From sequence record NC_070962.1: 64,000 nucleotides of DNA; one strand, written 5' to 3'. A program made the translations under genes and the position numbers. The notes beneath the pieces were generated by a model that saw nothing but the letters and a program-made list of their open reading frames with translations, did no database searches and was not told the DNA's origin. This document shows positions 12,562 to 14,576 of the stretch, in pieces; the first letter of the stretch is position 1; each line of letters begins with the position of its first letter.

Positions 12562-12992
12562 CAAAAATTGCTGAACCTCAGGTTACTTGGTCTCCTTCTA
12601 TGATGGTAGAGATCAATCTTCGTGAACCAGATGACTTCCTGAAGGTTCGTGAGACTCTAACCCGAATTGGTGTTGCTTCACGCAAAGAAAAGAAATTGTA
12701 CCAATCCTGCCATATTCTACATAAGCAGGGTAAATACTATATTGTTCATTTCAAAGAGTTATTTGCTCTTGATGGTAAGTATGCAAATATTACTGTAAAT
12801 GATGTTCAACGTAGAAATAGAATTGTTAAACTTCTAGTCGATTGGGGTCTTGTAGATCTCTTAGAAGAAGAGAAAATTCTTGATATTGCACCACTCAATC
12901 AGATTAAAGTTATTGCTTATAAGGAGAAGAGTGAGTGGACTCTAGAGCAGAAGTATAATATTGGTTCTAAGAAGAAAAAGGAAGAATCATGA
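12558..12992 (+). CDS. regA: Translational repressor RegA
   Basis: DDFLKVRETLTRIGVAS, LYQSCHILHKQGKYYIVHFKELF. Confidence 0.95.
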   Translation: MTKIAEPQVTWSPSMMVEINLREPDDFLKVRETLTRIGVASRKEKKLYQSCHILHKQGKYYIVHFKELFALDGKYANITVNDVQRRNRIVKLLVDWGLVDLLEEEKILDIAPLNQIKVIAYKEKSEWTLEQKYNIGSKKKKEES

Positions 12993-13564
12993 AGAAAATT
13001 CTCCTCAAGGATTTCATTTTCCAGGGGAGAGTAAAAGATCATGAATTGATCAGAGATGAACTTCTCTCCGAAATTGAAAAAACAAATTTTACAACAATAG
13101 AGAGAAATCCAGGTTCTATCGATAGTATTTCAAAGCTCGATTGGGATTGGGCAATGGATACTGATAGAACCTGGACTTCTTTGTTTGAAAAACATTTTTG
13201 GAATGCTATAGATGATTTTCTTTCTGTCACACCATATTTGTCTATTGAACTAAAAGAGATGTGGTTTCAGCAGTATGTAAAATGCGATATGCATAATTGG
13301 CATACTCATGGTGAACAGTATACTGGAGTTTATTATCTTGAATTTCCGAAAGGGAGTTCTAAGACAGAATTAGTTTTTCCTTATGATCACAGTAAACATC
13401 AAATATCAGTTGAGGAAGGAGATATAATTTTCTTTCCTGCACATGTTGCACATAGAGGAACGACTAATTTTACTGATAGAAAAACTATTATTTCATTTAA
13501 TTTTTCTATCGGAAACGATTATGATGATATTCTTGATTTCAAGGTACTGAATTCCGTACAATAA
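12989..13564 (+). CDS. 2OG-Fe(II) oxygenase-like (HxH type)
   Basis: WHTH, GVYYL, FFPAHVAHRG, RKTIISFN. Confidence 0.75.
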   Translation: MKKILLKDFIFQGRVKDHELIRDELLSEIEKTNFTTIERNPGSIDSISKLDWDWAMDTDRTWTSLFEKHFWNAIDDFLSVTPYLSIELKEMWFQQYVKCDMHNWHTHGEQYTGVYYLEFPKGSSKTELVFPYDHSKHQISVEEGDIIFFPAHVAHRGTTNFTDRKTIISFNFSIGNDYDDILDFKVLNSVQ

Positions 13565-13612
13565 ATTACGGTTCTCCACTTGTATATTTTTTTCTTTAAT
13601 GGTTAAATAGTA

Positions 13613-13667
13613 GTGGATGCCGAAAGGGTCCACACAATCAAATCTCGCTTACTAAGGAGAAGTACAG
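13613..13667 (+). promoter_or_regulatory. Structured 5' leader of hsp20, ROSE-like RNA thermometer candidate
   Basis: GNRA-capped hairpin at 13613-13633. A second hairpin pairs TCTC-G-CTT (13643-13650) with the SD AAGGAGA (13654-13660), leaving a bulged G. Confidence 0.55.
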
Positions 13668-14102
13668 ATGACTGACTTAATGAAGTATAATGCCGCCAAC
13701 ATGAATCAGTTGTTGGAACGCATTACTAGAAACAGTATTGGTATGGAAGATTACTTTGACAGGATCTTCACTCTACATGAAACTACATCAAATTACCCAC
13801 CTTATAATCTTGTTTCGGTAAATAATGTTACATCTCGATTAGAGATTGCTCTTGCAGGATTTAAGAAGAAGGAGGTTTATGTCTACACGCAAGATGGTAA
13901 ACTCTTTGTTGAAGGCCAGAAGGAAGACAAAGAGACGGAAACTAACTATGTCCACAAGGGTGTGGCTCAACGGTCATTTACACGTTCCTGGACACTCAGT
14001 GAGGACACGGAAGTTAGATCAGTTACTTTTGAAGATGGGCTTTTGAGTGTTGAACTTGGTAAGGTTGTTCCTGATGCACATAAACGAAAAGATTATCTAT
14101 AA
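13668..14102 (+). CDS. hsp20: Small heat shock protein Hsp20
   Basis: YPPYNL, LEIALAGF, HKGVAQRSFTRSWTL, FEDGLL (alpha-crystallin domain). Confidence 0.95.
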   Translation: MTDLMKYNAANMNQLLERITRNSIGMEDYFDRIFTLHETTSNYPPYNLVSVNNVTSRLEIALAGFKKKEVYVYTQDGKLFVEGQKEDKETETNYVHKGVAQRSFTRSWTLSEDTEVRSVTFEDGLLSVELGKVVPDAHKRKDYL

Positions 14103-14128: not shown

Positions 14129-14169
14129 GAGAGGTAACTGGCACAAACCAGTTGACACCTCTCTTTTTT
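14129..14169 (+). terminator. Rho-independent terminator overlapping a sigma70 promoter
   Basis: GAGAGG/CCTCTC outer stem and AACTGG/CCAGTT inner stem followed by a T tract; TTGACA(14152)-N17-TAAAAT(14175). Confidence 0.7.
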
Positions 14170-14201
14170 ATTGGTAAAATGAATTGGAGTAAACTAGGAT
14201 T

Positions 14202-14576
14202 ATGACTGTAAAACTTGCTGTACTAAAATCTGGTGAAGAAGTTATCACTGATGTAAAGGAAATGCATCATGGTGAAGGAGAAAACCAAAAGGTAGTTGGT
14301 TATTTCTTTAAGAAACCATGTGTAGTTCGTATGAAAAATATTGAAGGTGTTGATGATAAACCTCAAGTAACTTTTGATATTTCATTGCAACCTTGGGTTC
14401 CACTTGGAAAAGGACCAGTATATCCAGTAGCAATGGATTGGATTGTAACTTTTGTTGATCCAATTGACAAACTACGAAACGCATATCAAGAACAAATTTT
14501 GGACCAAGAGGATAGTGAATATGGAGAAATTAGTGATCAAGATTTTGGTTTTGACGGACCAAATGCGACTGATTAG
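14202..14576 (+). CDS. Conserved cyanophage hypothetical protein
   Basis: MTVKLAVLKSGEEVITDVKE; typical position upstream of 43. Confidence 0.75.
   Translation: MTVKLAVLKSGEEVITDVKEMHHGEGENQKVVGYFFKKPCVVRMKNIEGVDDKPQVTFDISLQPWVPLGKGPVYPVAMDWIVTFVDPIDKLRNAYQEQILDQEDSEYGEISDQDFGFDGPNATD

Follow-up and report, generated by a model that had tools for sequence, protein, structure and literature searches.

The leader of the hsp20 gene of Synechococcus phage S-SCSM1 raises the question of whether a virus can set the translation of its small heat-shock protein (sHSP) by temperature, through a structure in its own mRNA. T4-like cyanophages are among the most abundant viruses on Earth. The hsp20 gene belongs to the approximately 25 genes common to all of them (PMC3037559). 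An earlier note, made from the DNA letters, had read the leader as a ROSE-type RNA thermometer, and the analysis presented here followed up that claim in the window, a stretch of 64,000 nucleotides that is 100% identical to the S-SCSM1 record MK867354.2 (record position minus 62000 gives the window position used throughout). The explanation that best accounts for the locus as a whole is a ROSE-like thermometer leader on the cyanophage hsp20 mRNA, to which we assign a probability of roughly 0.6.

The hsp20 gene and its transcription unit

The hsp20 gene (13668-14102, + strand) encodes a 144-amino-acid, IbpA-like (class A) sHSP (Pfam HSP20, 5.9e-15; PHROG 432). Among the NCBIfam models the protein matches IbpA best, at 90.5 bits, a score short of the equivalog cut-off; it shares 36% identity with E. 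coli IbpA (E 2e-29). Phylogeny places the cyanophage sHSPs closer to the bacterial class A than to the sHSPs of their hosts; the phage gene and leader are of the proteobacterial class-A type and not of the host type (PMC3827213). The most economical reading is a joint acquisition of the gene with its leader.

The 5′ neighbour of leader and hsp20 is a 2OG-Fe(II) oxygenase gene (12989-13564), and two small open reading frames and the DNA polymerase gene lie a few hundred bases downstream of the leader stretch. A putative σ70-type promoter for hsp20 can be read at 13580-13609 (+ strand), formed by TTGTAT (13580-13585), a 17-nt spacer and TTAAAT (13603-13608), with a TG preceding the −10 box; the promoter consensus scan did not list it (13580-13608). 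The predicted start of the hsp20 mRNA would lie at about 13614-13617, that is, at the foot or the first conserved pair of the 5′ hairpin described below (hairpin I), a position in keeping with the finding that the two outer pairs of that hairpin are not conserved. Among 64 related loci, 59 carry a run of at least five T residues, of the kind found in the tail of a terminator, ending at a median of 24 nt 5′ of the hairpin core, and in 26 loci the best −10-like hexamer 2-12 nt 5′ of the core is TATAAT-like. The terminator upstream of hsp20 is degenerate in S-SCSM1.

Contigs from four RNA-seq libraries of one study span the region from 13626 or 13637 onward through hsp20; contig ends at 13623-13627 fall on the variable loop of hairpin I, may be breaks of the assembly graph and are unusable as a 5′ end. 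Since these contigs include the leader from 13626 on, a transcription start downstream of 13650, which the earlier note had named as evidence against a thermometer, is unlikely. The same libraries contain exact matches at 13000-13077 and no contig coverage between about 13122 and 13609 (about 490 nt), a pattern that argues against read-through from upstream. RNA-library contigs of several hsp20 variants have one common leader. The word depth of the contigs for leader and gene (13610-14100) was far above that of the neighbouring genes, contig depth being unable to rank expression.

Downstream of the gene, a terminator-like stem (14129-14169, + strand; GAGAGGU...ACCUCUC followed by U6) with a ΔG of −24.1 kcal/mol (z = −3.9) would close a transcription unit made up of hsp20 alone. 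A near-consensus σ70 promoter at 14152-14180 precedes the gene that follows (14202-14576; PHROG 431, weak DUF6561 match); it consists of TTGACA (14152-14157), 17 nt and TAAAAT with a TG and agrees with the consensus at 11 of 12 positions. Its −35 box is located within the loop and the 3′ arm of the hsp20 terminator stem; hence, the sites at which hsp20 terminates and the following gene is initiated would overlap.

Structure of the leader

Hairpin I (13613-13633, + strand) is a stable 5′-terminal stem-loop of the form GUGGAU-G-CC, GAAA loop, GG-GUCCAC, in which G13619 is bulged and the GAAA loop occupies 13622-13625. Its ΔG is −9.1 kcal/mol (z = −3.8), and none of 200 shuffled sequences was as stable. 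The GAAA-capped hairpin that had been claimed at 13613-13633 is thus present, and its core, 13615-13631, is conserved; the two outer pairs are not, 13613/13633 being paired in 23% and 13614/13632 in 78% of the sequences of a 65-leader alignment. The core is made of six inner pairs, 13615-13618 and 13620-13621 with 13626-13631.

A single-stranded, A/C-rich linker, ACAAUCAAA (13634-13642, + strand), joins the two hairpins and corresponds to the unpaired linker of the Pseudomonas ibpA element (PMC3669281). It has a few conserved A positions in the alignments A2 and A3; over 13632-13642, several nearly invariant A residues follow the pattern ACA..AA...AA. The linker may be a ribosome standby site or a translation enhancer.

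Hairpin II (13643-13660, + strand) holds the Shine-Dalgarno (SD) sequence. In the minimum free energy (MFE) fold, 13643-13646 and 13648-13650 pair with 13654-13660 and G13647 is bulged. The anti-SD strand, UCUCGCUU (13643-13650, + strand), contains the ROSE motif U(C)GCU, as UCGCU at 13645-13649, and is separated by the loop ACU (13651-13653, + strand) from the SD strand AAGGAGA (13654-13660, + strand), while the start codon at 13668 is unpaired. The pairing of TCTC-G-CTT with the SD around a bulged G and the presence of UCGCU opposite it, both pointed out in the earlier note, were confirmed in this fold. With a ΔG of −3.8 kcal/mol, hairpin II is not significant by itself (z = −1.55 for the 24-nt hairpin and −0.55 in a 35-nt context). 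The 64-kb window has a single occurrence of the pattern CTCGCT-N2-9-AGGAG, where 0.05 would be expected. The argument that hairpin II is more than a chance fold comes from its conservation.

Conservation and covariation among cyanophages

Leaders were collected from three sets of 80 IMG/VR loci, nearest to the Hsp20 of S-SCSM1, P-HM2 and P-SSM2, respectively, and from the hsp20 regions of the isolates P-SSM2, P-HM2, P-TIM68, S-PRM1, P-RSM6, S-CAM9 and Syn9. The leader is kept in every T4-like cyanophage examined, with all seven isolates and more than 160 distinct metagenomic leaders included, apart from a few degenerate metagenomic contigs, and the element is found once per phage genome, always at hsp20. 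A MAFFT alignment (A1) was not used for counts, the SD of one subclade being misaligned in it; all counts come from the model-based alignments A2 and A3, with 65 and 99 distinct leaders, both of which lean towards the structure of the model.

The element CUCGCU, its gap to AGGAG and the bulged G are retained in nearly all of about 165 distinct leaders. CUCGCU has a mean pairwise identity of 0.995 and the SD one of 0.93, against 0.58-0.61 for the two loops (0.61 for that of hairpin II, which varies among phages in sequence and length) and 0.54 for the spacer between SD and AUG. In the hsp20 codons, for comparison, identity is 0.56 at position 3 and 0.91 at position 2, so that CUCGCU lies above both and loops and spacers change at the rate of synonymous sites. 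One natural variant of the motif is CUUGCU, which ROSE elements also allow. Conservation of the anti-SD pairing, the lack of which had been set beforehand as a ground for giving up the thermometer, was observed. Degenerate variants amount to about 4 of about 300 loci. In three IMG/VR contigs (L348-L350, with about 73% Hsp20 identity to P-HM2), GACGCU replaces CUCGCU, leaving no room for the upper pairs, and the SD is the stronger AAGGAGGU; a further contig (L400) is missing the 5′ arm of hairpin I. These four could serve as natural controls of the function of the leader.

The bulged G of hairpin I has a mean pairwise identity of 1.0 and its stems of 0.91, and the six core pairs were formed in 100% of the 65 leaders and in the further 99, in alignments that favour this structure. 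Double compensatory changes are numerous at three of the pairs: one is G-C in 55 leaders, U-A in 37 and A-U in 2, another is A-U in 73 and U-A in 25, and the third exchanges U-G with C-G or U-A. The alignment of T4-like cyanophage leaders, which had been suggested as a check, yielded a covariation score of 0.189 for the hairpin I core, against 0.069 for column shuffles (0 of 500 reach the observed value) and at most 0.056 for slid partners. The loop exchanges among the stable tetraloops GAAA, UUCG and GUAA. In hairpin II little covariation is possible because one arm is the ribosome-binding site; nevertheless, its top pair covaries, being U-A in 87 leaders, A-U in 6 (the P-HM2 clade) and C-G in 1.

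Kinship with ROSE_3 and the proteobacterial ibpA leaders

Out of 4227 Rfam families, ROSE_3 (RF02523) was the sole match to the element. Positions 1-69 of the model align with 13611-13673, AUG included, at 24.8 bits (E 0.0043 in a 401-nt search), with its two helices in register with those of the phage and at the start of an ibpA-like gene. The same family was found at the same spot in seven other cyanophage leaders (20-27 bits) and gave a single match in the whole genomes of Syn9 (17.6 bits) and P-SSM2 (16.7 bits). The gathering score of ROSE_3, 43 bits, was not reached in the window (24.8) or in the other phages (16.7-27.1), and the Rfam families ROSE and ROSE_2 had no match in the window at E values up to 10.

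The reciprocal search was done with a covariance model, R1, built exclusively from phage leaders and run on bacterial loci fished with a pattern for hairpin I and CTCGCT. Since this pattern produced many chance matches in GC-rich genomes, a locus was kept only when the covariance model confirmed it and an sHSP open reading frame came after it; as hairpin I and CTCGCT were required by the pattern, independent confirmation is given by SD, AUG and sHSP gene only. SD and AUG, which lie outside the pattern, were present in the bacterial loci. With R1, the ibpA leaders of Stutzerimonas reached 31-32 bits (E about 1e-7), and one of them scores 62.1 bits with ROSE_3; R1 found others in Pseudomonas, Azotobacter, Acetobacteraceae, Rhodospirillaceae, Ferrovibrio and further groups. 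An sHSP-like open reading frame follows 18 of the 23 R1 leaders checked, its product being 25-38% identical to the phage Hsp20; 16 of them are full-length, with 147-166 amino acids. In the ibpA-ibpB intergenic region of E. coli K-12 (L209:1399-1479, minus strand), the phage model matches the ibpB leader with 18.8 bits; this leader has a hairpin of the hairpin I design (stem, bulged G, CC/GG and a 4-nt loop), and the ibpA leader is without such a module.

The Pseudomonas ibpA elements are the closest relatives studied by experiment. The two-hairpin leaders of P. putida and P. aeruginosa were identified as thermometers with reporter assays, structure probing and toeprinting (Krajewski et al. 2013, PMC3669281). 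Temperature is sensed by hairpin II, which is sufficient alone and frees the SD upon warming; the GC-rich hairpin I does not respond to temperature (PMC3669281). Phage and Pseudomonas elements share a leader of about 55-65 nt in front of an IbpA-type sHSP gene, two hairpins with a single-stranded linker, hairpin I arms GGAUGCC...GGGUCC with a bulged G, and a short hairpin II in which CUCGCU faces AGGAG around a bulged G, leaving the AUG free. They differ in that hairpin I of the phage has one pair fewer and ends in a tetraloop, that the phage hairpin II has U-A/U-A in place of the bacterial G-C clamp and is about 2 kcal/mol weaker, and that the phage element is carried by a cyanobacterial virus, under a promoter that looks like a phage early σ70 type and not like a σ32 one.

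The phage element thus has the sequence-level features of the ROSE-like class: it is located in the 5′ leader of an sHSP gene, its two hairpins include the SD in the 3′-proximal one, and U(U/C)GCU with a bulged G is placed opposite the SD. These features are under purifying selection and the matches between ROSE_3, the ibpA leaders and the phage leaders are reciprocal, which supports the ROSE reading at the level of sequence, structure and ancestry. We regard the phage leader as a divergent ROSE-like element, probably shifted to the cold, that entered the phages along with the IbpA-like gene. By homology with the bacterial elements, translation of the phage hsp20 would be under temperature control.

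A proposed thermometer with a weak sensing helix

In 63 phage leaders the ΔG of hairpin II at 37 °C averages −3.5 kcal/mol (range −4.4 to −1.4), whereas 12 of 14 bacterial leaders lie between −5.4 and −5.8 and the other two at −2.4 and −7.9; all are nearest-neighbour estimates, which ignore the non-canonical geometry known for ROSE. The phage hairpin II at 20 °C (−6.0) comes close in stability to its bacterial counterpart at 37 °C. The sequence in Pseudomonas, Stutzerimonas and E. coli is CUCGCUG...CAGGAG, which includes a G-C pair (UCUCGCUG...CAGGAG in the ibpA leader of E. coli). Opening the upper G-C pair of hairpin II in P. putida abolished regulation between 25 and 42 °C (PMC3669281). The weaker helix of the phages is consistent with retuning to a cooler habitat. 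The partition-function cost of opening the SD was dropped as a test of thermometers, as it depends strongly on the boundaries chosen; such estimates settle nothing because they do not separate known thermometers from other leaders and are low even for the proven ibpA leader of E. coli.

We propose the following model for the T4-like cyanophages, S-SCSM1 included. The leader would have come with a class-A (IbpA-like) sHSP gene from a proteobacterium-like donor. The hsp20 mRNA would start at or just before the stable 5′ hairpin, and at low temperature the invariant CUCGCU would pair with AGGAG around the bulged G, lowering binding of the 30S subunit. Warming would melt the weak hairpin II, allowing more Hsp20 to be translated in the absence of new transcription. 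Hairpin I would not sense temperature and probably aids the folding of hairpin II and protects the 5′ end. A sensing helix with two U-A pairs, about 2 kcal/mol weaker, would be appropriate for a host whose habitat is at roughly 10-30 °C. Several points weigh against this thermometer: hairpin II alone is no more stable than shuffled sequences, the upper G-C pair is missing, the Rfam scores stay below 43, and temperature changes in the ocean are small and slow, so that a lytic phage may gain little from a heat switch.

What else the leader could do

The trait that a pure thermometer does not need is the conservation of hairpin I at the level of sequence. GGAUGCC...GGGUCC and its invariant bulged G are kept from the phages to alpha- and gammaproteobacteria, which hints at a partner that reads the sequence. 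Such a partner could be the protein itself, free phage Hsp20 binding its own 5′ UTR and repressing its own translation, with temperature having at most a secondary role. During infection, aggregating proteins would titrate Hsp20 and translation would rise, a behaviour that can coexist with a thermometer. Gammaproteobacterial IbpA does repress its own translation through the ibpA 5′ UTR and needs R93 for this (PMC10474464). The phage protein is IbpA-like, its R102 aligns with R93, and the conserved hairpin I would fit a putative binding site. On the other hand, this arginine is common among sHSPs and does not discriminate, and the E. coli ibpA leader, for which self-repression was shown, is without a hairpin I of the GGAUGCC type. 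Taken as the main mode of control, a switch operated by Hsp20 seems unlikely to us.

Thermometer and self-repression might be combined in a dual sensor, in which a thermometer set about 15 °C colder than the Pseudomonas version would be joined to a hairpin I that acts as docking site of Hsp20 for its own shut-off. We put this forward tentatively, as a doubtful extension of the thermometer model. If it held, the virus would possess a self-contained proteostasis feedback loop responding to sea temperature as well as to the amount of misfolded protein during infection, and the stability of hairpin II among phage clades would track water temperature.

The weakness of hairpin II, about −3.5 kcal/mol at 37 °C without the G-C clamp, leaves room for a leader with no relevant sensing, a constitutive module inherited with the gene in which hairpin I stabilizes the 5′ end of the mRNA and hairpin II sets a fixed, moderate level of translation. 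Stem-loops at 5′ ends are known mRNA stabilizers (discussed in PMC3669281), and a few contigs lost one half of the element yet retain the gene, as occurs with the GACGCU loci and with the locus lacking the 5′ arm of hairpin I. If any weak occlusion served, however, it would be hard to account for an identity of 0.995 in CUCGCU, compared with 0.91 at second codon positions, across very divergent phages, and for the exact bulged-G geometry of ROSE being retained, with degenerate variants at about 4 of about 300 loci. These facts make a purely constitutive role rather improbable.

That the conserved sequence is a DNA operator, a Pho box bound by the host PhoB in place of any RNA element, was rejected as highly improbable: a Pho box overlapping CTCGCTT was indeed predicted 31 nt upstream of hsp20 (S-PM2d130) in S-PM2d, but the S-PM2d130 fragment did not bind PhoB in EMSA and the gene did not respond to phosphate limitation (PMC10976474), the site lies downstream of the likely −10 box, and the covariation of hairpin I points to selection on the RNA. 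A ROSE-like leader explains the conserved sequence that was misread as a Pho box. With the thermometer as the preferred reading, T4-like cyanophages probably tune Hsp20 by temperature or by protein stress, as judged by analogy with the bacterial systems.

Relation to other regulatory RNAs

The classical ROSE elements of rhizobia and the enterobacterial ibpA leaders (Rfam ROSE and ROSE_2) resemble the phage leader in the U(U/C)GCU anti-SD, the bulged G opposite the SD and the location upstream of sHSP genes. Unlike it, they are built of three or four hairpins, the sensing one being longer; the E. coli ibpA leader differs also by its lack of the hairpin I type found in phages. Self-repression by IbpA (PMC10474464) shares with the phage system an IbpA-like protein with the equivalent arginine, R102, and a ROSE-type leader, and has been shown for gammaproteobacterial IbpA only. 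In cyanobacteria, sHSP thermometers comprise the single hairpin of Synechocystis hsp17 and a ROSE-like element of Anabaena, as summarized in the citing account (PMC4166951). Compared by description, what they would share with the phage leader is that, inside a cyanobacterial cell, an sHSP is controlled at translation through occlusion of the SD or the AUG; by the same description, the Synechocystis element, a single hairpin without the UCGCU motif, is set apart from it. The mRNA of phage lambda cIII is a thermosensor that, following the outline of Altuvia et al. (1989) given in PMC4166951, is ON at low and OFF at high temperature through two alternative conformations. As in the model proposed here, structure in a phage mRNA makes translation dependent on temperature; sequence, structure and regulated gene are unrelated.

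Our search of the open-access full-text literature found no published description of a ROSE-like element at cyanophage hsp20, and in a review of 2024, phage RNAs that switch structure are still a matter of speculation (PMC10884466). If the thermometer model is right, the leader would be the first thermosensor of the ROSE type to be ascribed to a virus. A regulatory RNA of proteobacterial type would have travelled with its gene across a large host jump, into cyanobacterial phages, and have been retuned. The model predicts that the amount of phage Hsp20 is set post-transcriptionally by temperature, by protein-folding stress or by both. The leaders would make up a naturally occurring set of short and weak thermosensors, possibly active at 10-30 °C, of relevance for phage-host dynamics in a warming ocean and for low-temperature RNA parts.

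Two observations on other loci were made along with the analysis. In P-HM2 (GU075905.1 133301-133378; L082:515-592) the conserved leader, SD included, lies inside the annotated hsp20 open reading frame; the annotated start is hence about 72 nt too early, and the start that aligns with the other phages is L082:587. Upstream of purL in P-SSM2 (L081:1-132), the manA RNA motif (RF01745), which has already been described in cyanophages, was found with 113 bits in a match cut at the edge of the locus.
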